Sequence record: ON529857.1
DNA length: 64,000 bases
Direction: 5' to 3' (one strand)
The stretch's first letter is position 1. The number at the start of each line of letters is the position of its first letter. A program made the translations under genes and the position numbers. Under the pieces are notes generated by a model. That model made no database searches, was not told the origin of the DNA, and saw only the letters and a list, made by a program, of their open reading frames with translations. This document shows, in pieces, positions 2,705-44,455 of the stretch.

Positions 2705-5700
2705 CAGACAGGCTCCAGATCACCGAAGAGAGACCAGACGTTCGTCGCGATTTGCACCAGAGACGCGACGGAGTTCTGCCGGCGCAACCTCGGCTGCATG
2801 TCATCGGGATATTCCAGCGCGACCCCGCTTCCAGCCAAGATCGTGACCCGTCCAATCCCACCACGCTGCAACGAGAACGAAGCGCCGATCGGGAAGGGCA
2901 CGTCGCTATTAGGTGGGATGGTGACGGTCTTGTCCGCCGACGACGTGATCTTCCGATATGCCCGCCGATCTTGAGCCGTGAGCAAATAATCCGGATCACC
3001 ATCGCCTTGAAGCGTGACCTTCAGGAGGTCCATCAGGGCGAGCGCATCCACGTCATCGGACGTCGCCAGGCGCCTCCAACCTTGCACATAAGGCGGCGCC
3101 AACACCACGATCAGACCGTCGCCGCCGTTAGGCGCAGGTCCCGTCACGTTTTCAGTGGGATAGCCCACGCCGACATTGACTTGGTAGTGTTCGTCCGCCG
3201 TGTGCGGCGGTACGAGCCGATCCCCCGCCTCCGTGACGCCGGTGGCGCCTGCGGCCAGGTTCAAATATCCCGAGCCGCCGCCTCCGGGTTGCCCATCACC
3301 GCCGCCGCCGCCGCCGCCATAATACCCGCCGCCGCCGCCGCCGCCGTCATCCGTCGAGCTCGTAAAGCGATCCACAGCGGCGGTGCCTTGCCCGCCTTGC
3401 AGATAGCCGCCGCGCTTCGGAGCACTCGCGGAATCATTTCCGTCATAGCCCCCCGCAGTCTGCGTGCCTCCAGTCCCGCCGTTCGACGTCGAACTCGATT
3501 GCCCCGTATCGCCGCCGCCTGCGCCCGCGTTCGTGGCTGTATATCCGGAGCCGCCGCCGCCGCCGCCGGCAACCGCCATGAGCACGCCATTGCGCCACAC
3601 ACGCGCCGATCCACCGCCGCCGCCGCCGGCCGTATCGCCCAATCCCCCGAAGCCGCCATCGGGCCAGCCGCCAGCGCCGCCGTAGTTCGAGCGATATCCG
3701 CCCTGGCCGCCTGACGGCACATCCAGTTCGATCAGGTCTCCCTCATTGACTGCAAAGGTAACTTGCGTGAAACCGCCCGCTGCCGGATTGCCGCCCGTGG
3801 AATAACGACCCGTGCCGCCGCCGCCACCCCACAGCTTGAACGTCAAGGAGCTGACCTGGGGGCCGACAACGAACGATTGCCGGGTGCCGGTCGCCGTATA
3901 ATACGTCGGCGCCGTCGATCCCGCCGGCACCAGGGTCGAGACCCAAGCGTTGCCCGCGCTATCGCGTTGTTGATAGACCTTGCCCAAGGGCGCCGTCGCC
4001 GTGGGCTCGCCCGTCCCCGAGAACTCCCCTTCGGCAGCCTCAGGAGACCACGCCCCATCGCGATAGGTCAGCACCTGACCGTTACCGGGAGCTGTCGACG
4101 TGACGTCAGTCAGGTCGTCCAGCGCAATGTTGCCGGTATACGGCCGCCAACCCTCCTCAAAGGTCGCCGGGCCGTTGTCCAGCAGGATCGTCACATAGCC
4201 CGCTTCGGACGCCCCCGTAAAGGTCGCCTTAGGGGCAATCGACGTTCCAGCCGCCGCCGCCGCACTCGTTGCGACGTAGACGCGGTTTCCGCCTCCCGTC
4301 GGCGCCACGCCGGACGACAACGTCGTCCACGGCGCGTCCGGCGTCAATGTCGAGGAATTCGGCCGGGTCACATAGAGACCCAGTCCCAAGCCGTCATGCA
4401 GGGCGCGCGCCGTCAGAGGCGCGCGCGCCATTCCGGAAGCCGCCGAGGAATAGGAGGTGTCATCCTCCCACACGACGCCCTGGAAGCTCTCGGACCAGGT
4501 CGACATACCGGCGATCTCATAAATCACCATGGCCCCGGCGCCGATTTGACCGCCGCCCGACACAAACGGCGTTTGAGCCGCCGGTTCCGCGCTCACCGCT
4601 TGCTTATAGGCCACGGAGGGGCGCACACGGGTCGAGCCGGAGACCGGCGACCCAGGCAGCAACGTCCACCCAGACCCCGCCGTCGCGAGGGTCTGGTCGC
4701 ACAACAGCGCCACGAGCCAATTCCCCGCCGTAGGGGCAGCGGGCAAGGTCGCCGTAATCGGCTGCGCCGACGTCGCCGAGTTGTACGCATCCGACAGGAT
4801 ATGCTGAACAACCGTCGGCGCGGGGGCGACAGTGGGAACATCCTTCAGGCTCTGCGAAATTTGGCCGGTGACTTCGTCGATATAAAGCGACCCAGACGGA
4901 CGTGGCGTAGTCGGCCCGCCTTGTCCCGAGCCGATCATGGCGTTGTCGAGAAACAGTCCATCCGCCGAACCCGCCGGCAACGGGCGCCACTTGCCCGCCT
5001 GATAACGCAGGACATCGTTTTCACCCGGCCCGCCGACCGGCATCTCGACATCGCCGATATCCGCCATATAGACGGTGCCGCCGGACGACGCCGGAAGCTC
5101 CTTCGCACGCCACACGCCATTATCGTAGGTCAGGACATAGTCTTGAACCGGCGTGCCCAGGGTGACGTCAGACAGATCGTCGAGCGCTTCCGGGGGATTG
5201 ATGGCGTAGTCGCTCTCAATCACCTCCAGCTCGGCCCAACTACGGGCCAGGATGGAGTTGACTCCTGCGATATTGCTGTTGGCGCGAATCTCGAAATAAT
5301 CGCCAGGCACGACGCTGATCACAGGCGTCGAAACGGTCATTTCGTTGTTGATGTAGCCATTCAGTGACGAGTTTCGGGCCGTCGTCCGAGTCACTTTGAG
5401 GGCCACACCATTACGGTAAATGTCCGCGTAATTGGAGCCGGCACCGGCGACGCTGGTGAAGGCGACAAACGCCGTCACCCGCACCTTAGTGATGCCGGAC
5501 GGAATCGTCAGGCGGGTCGGCGCGGAGGTCGTAAAGAACCCATCCGTATCGGACGTTTCAGCTTGCCATGGTACGGTGGTCGGGAAGGTGACGCTGGTCA
5601 GATCGGTGGTGCGCTCAACCAGAGCGCCGCGCCACGGCGCCGTCCAGTTGCTGGTGTTCTCCGCCCCCGTCGTCGGCGGGGCAGATCGCCATTGCCCTCC

Positions 5701-38222: not shown

Positions 38223-38306
38223 TGGCTCTTGCGGTAGGACTCGAACCTACAAGCCTTTCGGCGCTCGCTTAACAGGCGAGTGCGGCTACCATTTCGCCAC
38301 GCAAGA
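38223..38306 (-). tRNA. tRNA-Asn(GTT) with class II-type variable arm
   Basis: Loop CTGTTAA; variable arm CGCCGAAAGGCTT; CCA encoded. Confidence 0.8.
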
Positions 38307-38720: not shown

Positions 38721-38795
38721 TGGCCCACTCGGGAGCGCTCGCATCTCCGTCTCGGGGATTTCACTCCCGCGCTACTCTGTCTCAGCTACGAGTGG
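38721..38795 (-). tRNA. tRNA-Phe(GAA), degenerate T-arm
   Basis: Acceptor CCACTCG/CGAGTGG, loop GTGAAAT, T-loop TGCGAGC, CCA; stem mismatches. Confidence 0.6.
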
Positions 38796-40772: not shown

Positions 40773-41075
40773 TCACGCTTCACCGGGGTGTGCGGCGTAA
40801 GGTGCGAAGGTGAAGTGATCGGGCGCCGCGACCGGCGGCAGATCATCAGCCGTGATCGGGCGGATGAAAAAGCGCATCAGCGCATTGTCGACGTTTTGCC
40901 AGGACGCCGCCTTCCATTCATCGCGCGCCGCCTCCCAGGTGGGAAAGACGCCCCGCACCACGACGGCCTCCGGATTACGAAACGCCGCATGGAACGTCGC
41001 CTTGTCTCTGGCGGGGTCCGTGACGGCCAAGTCCGCCATCTCTCCGCCGTAGACGGAATAACCGCAGACGCACAT
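40773..41075 (-). CDS. DUF4170-like protein
   Basis: VYGGE...GVFPTWEAARDEWKAASWQNVDNALMRFFI resembles the alphaproteobacterial DUF4170 family. Confidence 0.7.
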   Translation of the reverse strand: MCVCGYSVYGGEMADLAVTDPARDKATFHAAFRNPEAVVVRGVFPTWEAARDEWKAASWQNVDNALMRFFIRPITADDLPPVAAPDHFTFAPYAAHPGEA

Positions 41076-41839
41076 CAGCCGATCTCCACGATCAAATTGG
41101 GGTCGAAGTTAGGGTTCAACTCGTGCCCGATATAGCCGCGCGGATTGGTCAACACGCGCGTCTTGCCGATCTGGTAGTCGCTGGAATCGTGCATGTGACC
41201 GTGAACCCACAGGTCCGGCTCATACTCCAGGATCAGCGGCTCCAGGCGGGACGCATAACAGGGATTGAGCTCACTGCCGCGATAACGGGGATGGCTGGAC
41301 TGCTCCGAGGGCGCATGGTGGGTCACCACCACGGTCGGCCCATCATGCGCCAGGCGCAGCTGCTCCCGCAGAAAGAAAACGCTGCGCGTATGGAGGGATA
41401 GCACCGCCTCAGGCGTCAGGAGACGCATGGGCTCCGTTTCGATCTGTCGGTAGTCCGTCATGCCGCGCCGGGCCGCCATCATCGACAGATGTTGCGTGCC
41501 GTAGAGGTTGAAATCCGTCCACAGGGTCGCGCCCAGGAACCGCACGCCGTCGATCACGAGCGCCTCGTCATCCAGAACGTGCACCGAAGACCCCAGCTCG
41601 ACCGCCTTGGCCTTCATCTTCTCGATGTGGCGCTTAATTCGACGCTTGCCGTAGAACTCGTGATTGCCGGGGACGTAGACGACCGGGACGCCGGGAAAAT
41701 GACGATCCGCCCAGATCACGCCCACAACACCCGTGGCGGCGTCGCCGGCCAGGACCAGCACATCGCAAGGCGCCGGCGTGTAGTCGCGACCCATGCCGCC
41801 GAACTCCAGGTGCAGGTCGCTCAGAATGTTGATGCGCAC
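41075..41839 (-). CDS. Calcineurin-like metallophosphoesterase
   Basis: SDLHLE, AGD, PGNHE, VVTHHAP and WVHGHMH motifs. Confidence 0.92.
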   Translation of the reverse strand: MRINILSDLHLEFGGMGRDYTPAPCDVLVLAGDAATGVVGVIWADRHFPGVPVVYVPGNHEFYGKRRIKRHIEKMKAKAVELGSSVHVLDDEALVIDGVRFLGATLWTDFNLYGTQHLSMMAARRGMTDYRQIETEPMRLLTPEAVLSLHTRSVFFLREQLRLAHDGPTVVVTHHAPSEQSSHPRYRGSELNPCYASRLEPLILEYEPDLWVHGHMHDSSDYQIGKTRVLTNPRGYIGHELNPNFDPNLIVEIG

Positions 41840-41856
41840 GCGTATCCCCGTAAAAC

Positions 41857-41975
41857 TGGAGCGGGTGGGAAGACTTGAACTTCCGCCTCCGGGTTAGCGA
41901 CCCGGCACTCCTGATCTCGGCCGAGACCCGCAACCCGGTTCGGCCGAACCTGCTGCGCCCTAGAGCTTCACCCGC
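41857..41975 (-). ncRNA. tRNA-like element (GCT loop, Gly-type acceptor) with ~50-nt D-loop insertion
   Basis: Acceptor GCGGGTG/CACCCGC, U73, CCA, T-arm and anticodon arm CCGGG-TCGCTAA-CCCGG; the D-stem encloses two palindromic hairpins. Confidence 0.7.
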
Positions 41976-41979
41976 ATAA

Positions 41980-42395
41980 GGCGGCAGGAGTTTTAGAGGT
42001 GATGCGTCACCGGGCAAGCCCCCTGCCAGAAACCCCGTCTCCGCTTTTGTTAGGTCCAGAGACGAACGACCCTTCAAAGGCTCACATGGCACGACGTCGT
42101 CTCACGCGCTTCAGGCGTAGTCGCCCGAAACCGCAAGCCCGAGAGGTGGTGCACGATGGTATCGCCTTCCCGTGGCGACGTCTCGCGACGCCGCGATGTC
42201 TTACGACGCCTCTTCCCGGCCGCGTTCCGGAAAGAGGCGTCTAGCTGTTTGCGTGGAAACCGGACAAGCTCGCCCTACTCCCTAAGCAGTCCACGCTCCT
42301 CTGCTCGCGTCGTCCGGTCTGACGCTTCGCTCATCCAAGGCCTGGGTCTTTCGACCGGAACGTGCGCTACGTCAGGCCGCCGGGGATGTCTGTGT
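41980..42395 (-). ncRNA. Putative large structured ncRNA (~420 nt)
   Basis: No credible ORF. 15-bp hairpin at 42205..42241, GNRA-capped hairpins (GGTC-GAAA-GACC, CGTC-GCGA-GACG) and further helices; promoter-like TTGACG at 42424..42429. Confidence 0.55.
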
Positions 42396-42429
42396 GGGGA
42401 TTACTGGCACTGTTCGACACCGACGTCAA

Positions 42430-42465
42430 CAAAGAAAAACGCCCCGGCGTTTCGGCCGGGGCGTT
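42430..42465 (-). terminator. Intrinsic terminator ending tRNA operon 2
   Basis: AACGCCCCGG-N8-CCGGGGCGTT followed by TTTCTTT. Confidence 0.85.
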
Positions 42466-42467
42466 CT

Positions 42468-42782
42468 TCAGAGGTTCATCATCCACTGCTTGCGGTGGCG
42501 CGTGAAATCCTTCCAGGATTTGCCGGCGCGACGGGACGCCATGATGTCGTCCCAGGAGGACGGCAGGTGCTTCCGGCGCCCACGCACGGGGACGACGCGA
42601 TCATGAACGTCGCCCGCGTTTCGGCGGCGCTCCTGCATGGTGCGCGGATGCCGGAAATACTGCCGCCAGCGATGGCGAAAGCGCCGGCAGGGGTAGGGGT
42701 CGCCGGGCTCCGCATGGTAGATCGTCCAAGGCCCGACGAAATAGTATCCGGTATGGGTGATGCGTTGGAATTGGGGCTTCAA
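42468..42782 (-). CDS. Basic hypothetical protein (104 aa)
   Basis: GGAGG before the TTG start; C-terminal HLPSSWDDI...SWK...KQW motif; followed by a terminator. Confidence 0.7.
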   Translation of the reverse strand: MKPQFQRITHTGYYFVGPWTIYHAEPGDPYPCRRFRHRWRQYFRHPRTMQERRRNAGDVHDRVVPVRGRRKHLPSSWDDIMASRRAGKSWKDFTRHRKQWMMNL

Positions 42783-42885
42783 AACAGCCTCCTGTCAGGT
42801 TGATTACCTAACGGGTGCTGTGCTCCAGGTAGAACTTGATCATCATGGCCCCATGATACGGCAAGCTGGGCCGTTGGTCCAGAAT

Positions 42886-42974
42886 TGGTGGATGGAGCAG
42901 GGATCGAACCTGCGTAACGCTCTCGCGTGTCGACCGCTTAGCAAGCGGCTGCCTTACCTCTCGGCCACCCATCC
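42886..42974 (-). tRNA. tRNA-Ser(GCT)
   Basis: Loop TTGCTAA, long variable arm, CCA. Confidence 0.88.
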
Positions 42975-42981
42975 GGGGTGG

Positions 42982-43066
42982 TGGCGGTGCGCCAGGGAAT
43001 CGAACCCTCGACCTTGCGGTCGGCTACGGTTTTCAAGGCCGCTTGTCCCCATGGACGCTGCACACC
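42982..43066 (-). tRNA. tRNA-Ser(TGA)
   Basis: Loop CTTGAAA, long variable arm, G73, CCA. Confidence 0.82.
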
Positions 43067-43071
43067 AATGA

Positions 43072-43161
43072 TGGCGGACGGCGAGGGATTTGAACCCCCG
43101 GACCCTTGCGGGCCGCCTGCTTTCCGGGCAGGTGCCTTAAGCCGGACTCAGCCAGCCGTCC
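43072..43161 (-). tRNA. tRNA-Ser(GGA), C33
   Basis: Loop CCGGAAA, long variable arm, G73, CCA. Confidence 0.88.
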
Positions 43162-43166
43162 GTTGT

Positions 43167-43384
43167 TGGTGGAGGCGAGGGGATTCGAACCCCCGTAGAC
43201 GCCGAACCCCCGCATTACCAGGGGCCGATCTTCGGTTTAGAACGCGTGTGCCGCCCTGACCATCTTCCGCAGGCCAGGAGGTCTATCGTAACGACCCCGT
43301 CGATCGGTTGCCTCTGCGCCCCGGTTTTACCCGGACCGTTATTCTGTTCCACGGTGCTCATGCCGAAACCCGAGCGACGCCCCC
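43167..43384 (-). ncRNA. ssrA: Short one-piece tmRNA-like gene (218 nt)
   Basis: Ala-type acceptor GGGGGCG/CGCCTCC with G3-U70, A73 and CCA; T-arm GGGGG-TTCGAAT-CCCCT; stemless D-loop ending GGTTTCGGC; no anticodon arm. Confidence 0.65.
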
Positions 43385-44368: not shown

Positions 44369-44455
44369 TGGAGGATATGGTGGGACTCGAACCCACGATG
44401 GACTTTCGTCAGAGGATTAAGAGCCCTCCCCTCTCGCCGCTGAGGTGACATATCC
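44369..44455 (-). tRNA. tRNA-Lys(CTT) with long variable arm
   Basis: Loop CTCTTAA; variable arm TGACGAAAGTCCATC; CCA. Confidence 0.8.

Follow-up and report, generated by a model that had tools for sequence, protein, structure and literature searches.

A tRNA-shaped piece lies 3' of a longer non-coding RNA in MALAT1/mascRNA and among the stable RNAs of the phage T4 tRNA operon, where the RNase P cut forms the 3' end of the upstream RNA, and RNAs such as phi29 pRNA and the HIV-1 dimerisation hairpin assemble through loop-loop contacts. YrlA-type Y RNAs (RF02553) are tRNA mimics bound by Ro60/Rsr, some of which are cut by RNase P and given CCA (PMC4201824; bioRxiv 10.1101/312249). ROOL, GOLLD and OLE form homo-oligomers, and ROOL and GOLLD are phage-associated and often located near tRNA genes (PMC12286853, PMC12990946). 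Here we describe a tRNA-like RNA encoded by Brevundimonas phage vB_BpoS-Kikimora (Dolichocephalovirinae; ON529857.1, 312.6 kb), located in a stretch of 64,000 nucleotides of this record (referred to as the window; window coordinate = record coordinate - 186000). Comparison with related sequences demonstrates its fold, its conservation, the covariation of its loops and the loss of decoding hallmarks, and identifies it as a real, conserved and unannotated phage RNA gene. As judged by these features it belongs among the tRNA-like RNAs, as a mimic that has normal tRNA topology and carries an elbow module of two hairpins with co-evolving loops.

The RNA runs from 41975 (5' end) to 41857 (3' end) on the minus strand (record 227857-227975) and is 119 nt long. 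It lies at the end of a large tRNA array, and ARAGORN finds 24 tRNAs in the window, this RNA not among them. Covariation was assessed in five distinct sequences, those of Kikimora, Kabachok, CcrColossus, CcrPW and the metagenomic viral contig IMGVR_UViG_3300037350_000011 (the L254 contig, 893-1011), with the 21 cloverleaf pairs giving 105 base-pair cells. A covariance model of the family, R1, was built without the L254 contig. The parts of the RNA in Kikimora are the following:

41857..41975, minus strand: the whole tRNA-like RNA, 119 nt, recognised by its sequence, an R1 score of 122.6 bits and cloverleaf covariation
41969..41975, minus strand: 5' strand of the acceptor, GCGGGUG, with its partner at 41861..41867; 1:72, 3:70 and 5:68 vary on both sides in relatives
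41958..41966, minus strand: 5' strand of the D-stem, GCUC, followed by U14-A-G-G-G; the same in all five sequences; pairs with GAGU at 41907..41910
41929..41957, minus strand: insert hairpin H1 (from folding), 29 nt, 11 bp, apex TCGGCCGA at 41940..41947; a hairpin of 10-12 bp stands here in all five lineages, with unrelated sequences
41913..41928, minus strand: insert hairpin H2 (from folding), 16 nt, 6 bp, apex TCGGCCGA at 41917..41924; its apex word equals or complements that of H1 in every lineage
41907..41912, minus strand: A-G linker and 3' strand of the D-stem, GAGU; the G preceding GAGY is invariant
41889..41905, minus strand: anticodon arm CCGGG-UCGCUAA-CCCGG with C33 and the 'anticodon' GCU; the best-conserved segment; 28:42 changes from C-G to G-C in the L254 contig
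41868..41884, minus strand: T arm GGAAG-UUCAAGU-CUUCC with a canonical T-loop; three of its five pairs vary on both sides
41861..41867, minus strand: 3' strand of the acceptor, CACCCGC; the acceptor helix is paired in 97% of cells
41857..41860, minus strand: discriminator U73 and encoded CCA (CCA at 41859..41857); UCCA in four lineages, U-CGC in the L254 contig

A8 and A9 lie between the 5' strand of the acceptor and the D-stem, G26 joins the D-stem to the anticodon arm, the variable region consists of the four nucleotides AGGC, and the GG of the D-loop is a candidate partner of the T-loop. An intact acceptor, T-arm, anticodon arm and CCA, a TCGCTAA loop with C33 and a GCT anticodon, and a short variable loop had all been described in the initial annotation, and each of them was located on the minus strand. 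The D-loop insertion of 50 nt that it also described is present, but measures 45-46 nt and is placed after the D-loop GG. In the predicted L-shape, this site within the variable part of the D-loop corresponds to the outer corner.

The cloverleaf core carries clear marks of selection. Standard pairs are found in 99% of the 105 cells, compared to 39-56% when the partners are slid. Seven of the 21 pairs show changes on both sides (1:72, 3:70, 5:68, 28:42, 50:64, 51:63 and 52:62), and these seven compensatory pairs were matched in none of 500 shuffles. The G-U pairs at 10:25 and 50:64 indicate that it is the minus strand that is the conserved RNA. The parts that stay constant are GCUCUAGGG in the D-loop, the G that precedes the 3' strand of the D-stem, G26, the AGGC of the variable region, the T-loop UUC-R-AGU and most of the anticodon arm. 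Core identity is 78-96%, or 78-90% when different lineages are compared, and between lineages the insert is 50-63% identical. Folding energy alone is weak evidence, with z values from -1.2 to -3.1 being unremarkable for GC-rich DNA. On the strength of the paired substitutions, the complete tRNA cloverleaf is maintained by selection. A sequence degenerate in relatives, as expected of a simple pseudogene, had been considered from the outset, and the five lineages instead display compensatory changes; because the fold is conserved with such changes, a pseudogene was rejected. Protein coding via the overlapping open reading frames (152 aa on the minus strand, 215 aa on the plus strand) was also rejected, as Gurke and Kikimora differ by an indel of 193 nt and the stem substitutions are compensatory.

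The insert changes much faster in sequence than in plan. Its size ranges from 45 to 53 nt across members, and in all five sequences a longer H1 (10-12 bp) is followed by a shorter H2 (6-8 bp). The two Kikimora hairpins had been noted before as centred on CGGCCG; the relatives turn such matching apexes into a rule, with four different apex words among the five sequences:

Kikimora: H1 TCGGCCGA, H2 TCGGCCGA
Kabachok: H1 CACGCGAA, H2 TTCGCGTG, an exact 8-nt complement that is non-palindromic
L254 contig: H1 TGCGCA, H2 TGCGCA
CcrColossus: H1 AGCGCT, H2 AGCGCT
CcrPW: H1 GAAGCGCT, H2 AGCGCTTC

The two 10-nt apexes are complementary over 6-8 nt within a phage and over at most 4 nt across lineages. 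Under three null models, the probability of such a match arising by chance is 0.0002-0.006 for 8 nt and 0.008-0.024 for 6 nt, and taken lineage by lineage it amounts to 0.0006-0.024. Cognate H1xH2 duplexes have predicted energies of -9.9 to -16.5 kcal/mol, and in Kabachok the H1xH2 duplex reaches -14.1 kcal/mol versus -6.3 kcal/mol for H1xH1. Judging from this joint change between lineages, the complementary words at the hairpin tips co-evolve. A dispersed palindromic repeat was considered as the source of the hairpins and rejected: TCGGCCGA has 18 copies in the 312-kb Kikimora genome versus 10 for the control, none of them in other RNA loci, and only here are two copies no more than 30 nt apart.

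BLAST detected the element in 11 phage records, representing nine Brevundimonas/Caulobacter jumbo phages, with a single copy per genome. It is identical in Kikimora and Gurke and likewise among Kabachok, Domovoi, Papperlapapp, Marchewka and Bambus, the remaining phage carriers being CcrColossus and CcrPW. Pattern scans added the L254 contig as the tenth carrier, which also shares the promoter-like motif, the leader module, the downstream phosphoesterase gene (all described below) and the tRNA array. This was the sole new member in pattern scans of IMG/VR, JGI metagenomes and GTDB genomes, the other matches being due to chance, and no further member came from 63 loci with a homologous phosphoesterase gene, none being found beside 60 other genes of this kind. 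R1 gave a single copy scoring above 120 bits in each of Kikimora, Kabachok, CcrColossus and CcrPW, and 81.5 bits for the L254 contig. Ordinary tRNAs stayed at about 47 bits or below, and the best non-family match was a phage tRNA-Gly(GCC) with 47.4 bits. Weak long R1 matches on three other contigs (L263, L264 and L269) were judged to be non-members. The last of these (IMGVR_UViG_3300049070_000354), an unrelated viral contig, holds at 2780-2900 a different tRNA-like RNA of about 115 nt, whose acceptor stem is extended and whose T arm is canonical, adjoining the 3' side of a homologous metallophosphoesterase gene.

The insert hides the gene from standard tools. ARAGORN makes no call with the insert in place, and once the insert is deleted in silico it reports a normal tRNA of 74 nt for each of the four relatives examined, assigned as Ser(GCU) in the Brevundimonas phages and as Asn(GUU) in the Caulobacter phages. 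The Rfam tRNA model (RF00005, gathering threshold 29 bits) reaches 31.1 bits, but only via a partial alignment that starts at 41931 inside the insert; this 72-nt alignment was rejected since its 5' strand is Kikimora-specific and not kept in relatives. In an Rfam scan of 41700-43100 with E up to 10, this partial tRNA match was the only one on the element and the upstream leader had none, and identities as GOLLD, ROOL, YrlA or tmRNA were rejected for want of a match. The two genome papers give only tRNAs found by tRNAscan, Rfam or ARAGORN (PMC3556154, PMC10070969). None of the 11 GenBank records annotates the RNA, and genes like this one are overlooked by standard tRNA finders.

Compared with a canonical class I elongator tRNA (RF00005, especially the alphaproteobacterial and phage tRNA-Gly(GCC)), the RNA has the same 7/4/5/5-bp cloverleaf, GG, UUCRAGU T-loop, 4-nt variable region and U73-CCA. 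It differs in the two-hairpin D-loop insert of 45-53 nt (a usual D-loop has about 7-11 nt), in having A8/U14 instead of U8/A14 and no U33, in an anticodon that is untied from the body, and in acceptor identity pairs that are unconserved. With YrlA it shares tRNA mimicry, and Ro60 and YrlA-like RNAs occur in the same phages. YrlA, however, is circularly permuted, with a closed acceptor stem, an anticodon stem running into the Ro-binding helix and a position at most 4 kb from the Ro60 gene, whereas in the tRNA-like RNA the topology is normal, the anticodon arm is closed and the CCA end is free. It gave no RF02553 match at E up to 10, and a YrlA identity was rejected by topology, by the 70 kb to the Ro60 gene and by the unconserved Ro-site motif. 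Like tmRNA, it is phage-encoded and combines a tRNA-like acceptor/T-arm module with a large insertion that separates the 5' strand of the acceptor from the T arm. Unlike tmRNA, it has an intact anticodon arm and G3:C70 rather than G3:U70, and it lacks both pseudoknots and a tag reading frame; neither ARAGORN nor Rfam calls a tmRNA at this site. mascRNA and the T4 stable RNAs resemble it in having a tRNA shape behind a longer RNA, but they lack an elbow insertion with co-varying loops, and processing is here only presumed. Loop-loop assembling RNAs likewise have complementary GC-rich loop words that co-vary between relatives, yet they have no tRNA body, and assembly is here suggested by the sequences alone.

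The phages that carry the RNA also encode RNA-repair genes. TROVE/Ro60 protein, RtcB and a CCA-adding enzyme are encoded by each of Kikimora, Kabachok and CcrColossus, which were searched directly, and according to BLAST the same Ro60 occurs in all nine phages with the tRNA-like RNA; this co-occurrence may reflect shared ancestry rather than functional linkage. In Xanthomonas phage Sopo the Ro60 is 61% identical and YrlA-like RNAs are present as well, but not the tRNA-like RNA. The YrlA-like RNAs, found immediately upstream of the Ro60 gene, score 27.1-42.3 bits, which is below the threshold of 69. In ON529857.1, the Ro60/TROVE gene and two such RNAs (38.8 and 31.3 bits, both sub-threshold) occupy 156926-158900, one of them overlapping an annotated 'tRNA-Ser', and of the three YrlA-like matches in CcrColossus one carries 35 extra nucleotides in its acceptor-like hairpin. 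In bacteria, rsr-yrlBA-rtcBA forms an RNA-repair operon (PMC4201824, PMC7790460), and by gene content the Ro60/YrlA-like/RtcB set of the phages corresponds to the genes of this operon, dispersed over the genome. A permuted two-piece tmRNA was also observed in ON529857.1 at about 154566-154911 on the minus strand (tmRNA_permuted 57.7 bits, threshold 47; alpha_tmRNA 40 bits); the genome paper reports that no tmRNA was detected.

Decoding hallmarks are largely missing. U33 is near-universal in tRNAs, and here position 33 is C, G, C, C and A in the five sequences, never U. Position 35 is C or U, which makes the anticodon GCU in one group and GUU in the other, so that the same conserved body would decode Ser in one group of hosts and Asn in the other. 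Kikimora already has a normal tRNA-Ser(GCU) and a normal tRNA-Asn(GUU), as called by ARAGORN. With a variable region of only 4 nt the arm for SerRS is missing, and the identity elements do not fit the anticodon, neither for Ser (long variable arm) nor for Gly (G1:C72, C2:G71, G3:C70, C35, C36), following established identity rules (reviewed in PMC9976931). The acceptor had been called Gly-like with U73, which holds for Kikimora but is not kept in relatives, where 1:72 is G-C, A-U or A.A and 3:70 is G-C or C-G; the L254 member even has CGC instead of CCA. A mis-aminoacylating tRNA, one of three functions proposed initially, is the least likely of them, given the unconserved acceptor, the GCU/GUU switch, the lack of a Ser arm and the one member without CCA. 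Taken at face value, these features indicate that the tRNA-like RNA is probably not a decoder.

We favour, with somewhat better than an even chance, a trans-acting and non-decoding tRNA mimic. The RNA would be transcribed from its own conserved promoter-like motif behind a structured leader of 202-423 nt. RNase P would cut at +1, the same cut forming the 3' end of the leader RNA, and the A/U-rich trailer would be cut and trimmed to U73-CCA, with the insert being retained in the released 119-nt RNA. This RNA would then act in trans as a tRNA look-alike whose invariant, U33-less anticodon arm may, together with the D-arm, be recognised by a protein that binds tRNA (a nuclease of the host that targets tRNA, or an RNA-repair factor of the phage), while H1 and H2 may pair with a second molecule to form a tail-to-tail dimer presenting two tRNA bodies. 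We infer the promoter, the processing by RNase P and trimming (from tRNA biology), the action in trans and the dimerisation. A decoy for tRNA-cleaving nucleases, which was also among the functions first suggested, is rather unlikely as the specific role; it is compatible with a position 33 that is never U, with the invariant G34 and U36-A37-A38 and with the phage RNA-repair gene set.

The dimer itself is a tentative proposal, for which the apex words are the evidence. Pairing of H1 with H2' and of H2 with H1' between two molecules would yield two composite helices, parallel and equally long, that end on either side in a tRNA body. The same pairing inside one molecule, as a loop-loop helix of 6-8 bp with the stems intact, appears sterically unlikely, since H1 and H2 abut at their bases and are of unequal length, and apex-apex pairing within a Kabachok molecule would need its 11-bp stem to be melted. 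Instead of pairing between molecules, the hairpins may act as an intramolecular switch or as twin sites bound by a dimeric protein. More tentative still is the idea that the RNA is a natural building block of tRNA shape and that a tail-to-tail dimer with two U33-less bodies traps or titrates a dimeric host enzyme that attacks tRNA, or docks the phage Ro60/RtcB repair machinery.

Several observations weigh against the reading as a trans-acting mimic that dimerises. There are five independent sequences only, from a single phage clade, and the locus is covered only by low-depth metagenome contigs of uncertain RNA or DNA origin (four runs, three of them wastewater 'RNA-Seq'). G34, U36, A37 and A38 are invariant, as in a real ANN-reading anticodon loop, implying that this loop is read by something. 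The loop words are palindromic in three lineages and part of the apex match arises because each hairpin is a perfect inverted repeat; in addition, the predicted minimum-energy fold for Kikimora joins both apexes in one molecule rather than forming two hairpins. As to a link with Ro60, its gene (record 156926-158296) is 70 kb away. A GNCGAA(N0-1)G Ro-site motif is located near the YrlA 5' end (PMC4201824), and here the motif G-N-CGAA is unconserved, GNCGAA(N0-1)G occurring sporadically in two of six transcripts, at non-homologous places.

The surroundings of the RNA bear on a second possibility, a signal acting in cis. The elements of the unit and its neighbours are:

42434..42469, minus strand: intrinsic terminator of the upstream 104-aa gene; strong, and parts the RNA unit from the tRNA array
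42399..42429, minus strand: promoter-like motif TTGAC-N18-AGTAATC; kept in all lineages and unique in the 312-kb genome
41976..42398, minus strand: leader of 423 nt, in the same transcription unit as the tRNA-like RNA; no Rfam family at E up to 10
41075..41839, minus strand: metallophosphoesterase gene (PF00149, PHROG 1649), starting 18 nt past the CCA; same synteny in all relatives

Since the motif obtained no score in a sigma-70 consensus scan, its promoter function is putative, and the idea that it might be a regulon signal was rejected because it is unique in the genome. The leader varies from 202 to 423 nt among lineages, its 5' part is variable, and its last 70 nt or so (41976..42045) form a conserved module with GACGGGGUU, an enclosing stem, hairpins and a CUGAAAAC-type loop. 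A large structured RNA had been placed just upstream of the tRNA-like RNA; such an RNA does exist there, though as the leader of the same transcription unit and not as a separate gene. A 193-nt leader segment, 42198..42390, is missing from Gurke, which is otherwise 98% identical, and from the other relatives, and a wastewater metagenome contig holds part of this segment with 21 differences; it may therefore represent a deletion in Gurke, not a Kikimora-specific insertion. No terminator was found between the CCA and the metallophosphoesterase gene. One wastewater 'RNA-Seq' library, rated as probably DNA, yielded a contig of 238 nt at a depth of about 2, which matches 41736-41971 without a difference and spans the CCA into the coding region.

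According to this second possibility, the RNA would be a processing signal only: its tRNA shape recruits RNase P and 3' enzymes, parting the leader from the phosphoesterase mRNA, and the released piece has no role. An RNase P processing signal had been proposed earlier, and it fits the layout, with promoter-like motif, leader, tRNA-like RNA and gene arranged in series without a terminator, the acceptor and T arm forming an intact 12-bp stack, U at -1 in four lineages and an A/U-rich trailer. Co-transcripts of tRNA and mRNA and ends defined by RNase P, as in MALAT1/mascRNA, provide precedents. Yet RNase P needs only the acceptor/T-arm minihelix, and it is the anticodon arm and GCUCUAGGG of the D-loop that are best conserved; such a signal also leaves unexplained the matched loops of an insert that keeps two hairpins with co-varying tips. 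Moreover, the spacer between CCA and start codon ranges from 18 nt in Kikimora to about 125 nt in CcrColossus. On these grounds a purely cis-acting role is unlikely.

Of similarly low probability is the alternative that the hairpin loops are twin sites for a dimeric RNA-binding protein and change together as the specificity of the protein changes. Both hairpins do carry the same tetraloop in four of the sequences (GGCC in Kikimora; GCGC in CcrColossus, CcrPW and the L254 contig), and the phages encode several RNA-binding proteins, including Ro60. In Kabachok, however, the apexes CACGCGAA and TTCGCGTG are complementary and not identical, as predicted by pairing and not by twin sites. Nor is any protein gene consistently linked to the RNA: linkage of the adjacent 104-aa basic protein is unconserved, its gene being absent from the L254 contig and far off in CcrColossus. 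Gurke and Kabachok annotate this very basic and conserved protein on the minus strand (PHROG 12793; 42468-42782 in the window), with the terminator after it, and the Kikimora call in the same region, KIKIMORA_03730 (215 aa, 42156-42803, plus strand), was probably made on the wrong strand.

A shade less probable again is a real decoding tRNA that reads AGY in the Brevundimonas phages and AAY in the Caulobacter phages, with the insert either kept or removed followed by ligation by RtcB. The full cloverleaf with T-loop, GG, U36-A37-A38 and CCA is what such a tRNA requires, RtcB and a CCA-adding enzyme are phage-encoded, and E. coli ribosomes tolerate large variable-loop insertions (PMC5397188). 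In the D-loop, on the other hand, a Spinach aptamer inserted into E. coli tRNA-Tyr gave no stable expression (PMC5397188). Further arguments against decoding are the two anticodons on one body that never has U33, the variation of 1:72 and 3:70, the lack of a long variable arm for Ser, the discriminator U73 and the normal phage tRNAs that supply both anticodons. Archaeal pre-tRNAs with non-canonical D-loop introns (PMC3241643) similarly have extra RNA in the D-arm region of an otherwise normal tRNA, but here the host is bacterial. Removal of the insert by archaeal-type splicing was rejected, as the tRNA splicing endonuclease family PF01974 is absent from the three phage genomes searched (the search did not extend to a host enzyme) and no bulge-helix-bulge can be seen where the insert joins the core, both hairpins lying wholly inside the insert.

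A decaying tRNA gene broken by a palindromic insertion, that is, a pseudogene or mobile-element scar, would agree with the RNA being unannotated, missed by ARAGORN and marginal in its Rfam score, but is highly improbable in view of the compensatory changes in three of the four core helices, the 99% pairing, the conserved insert architecture, a palindrome that is no dispersed repeat and the same locus in every member of the clade.

Some other tRNA genes and tRNA-like sequences of the window, all on the minus strand, also deserve mention. At 42985-43067 lies an unannotated class II tRNA with the loop CUUGAAA, anticodon UGA (Ser) and a long variable arm; it was missed by ARAGORN and GenBank and found by Rfam only as tRNA-Sec (30.8 bits), and CcrPW annotates a tRNA-Ser(TGA) at the matching place. 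A 75-nt tRNA-like sequence at 38721-38795, between tRNA-Tyr and tRNA-Val, has a 7-bp acceptor, a GCCA end and the non-canonical T-loop UGCGAGC; it was missed by ARAGORN and at the Rfam gathering threshold, scores 29.9 bits with R1 and has a counterpart at 4397-4471 of the L254 contig. Long variable arms, normally confined to Ser, Leu and Tyr tRNAs, were also seen in an 87-nt tRNA-Lys(CUU) with U73 at 44369-44455 and in an 84-nt tRNA-Asn(GUU) at 38223-38306. Finally, a 218-nt Ala-type tRNA-like RNA at 43167-43384 has a G3:U70 acceptor and an ACCA end visible in its sequence.

Phage tRNA genes are now viewed as weapons against host nucleases that cut tRNA, and to our knowledge bacterial tRNA mimics such as YrlA are still without a known partner. 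The carriers of the RNA described here include culturable phages of Caulobacter crescentus, a genetically tractable host, so that both the look-alike role and the dimerisation are directly testable. The RNA is small and well defined, and it keeps the whole tRNA fold while the features of decoding have been dropped. Its structured elbow module sits where an engineered D-loop insertion in E. coli tRNA-Tyr was not stably expressed, and its co-evolving hairpin loops point to RNA-RNA assembly.

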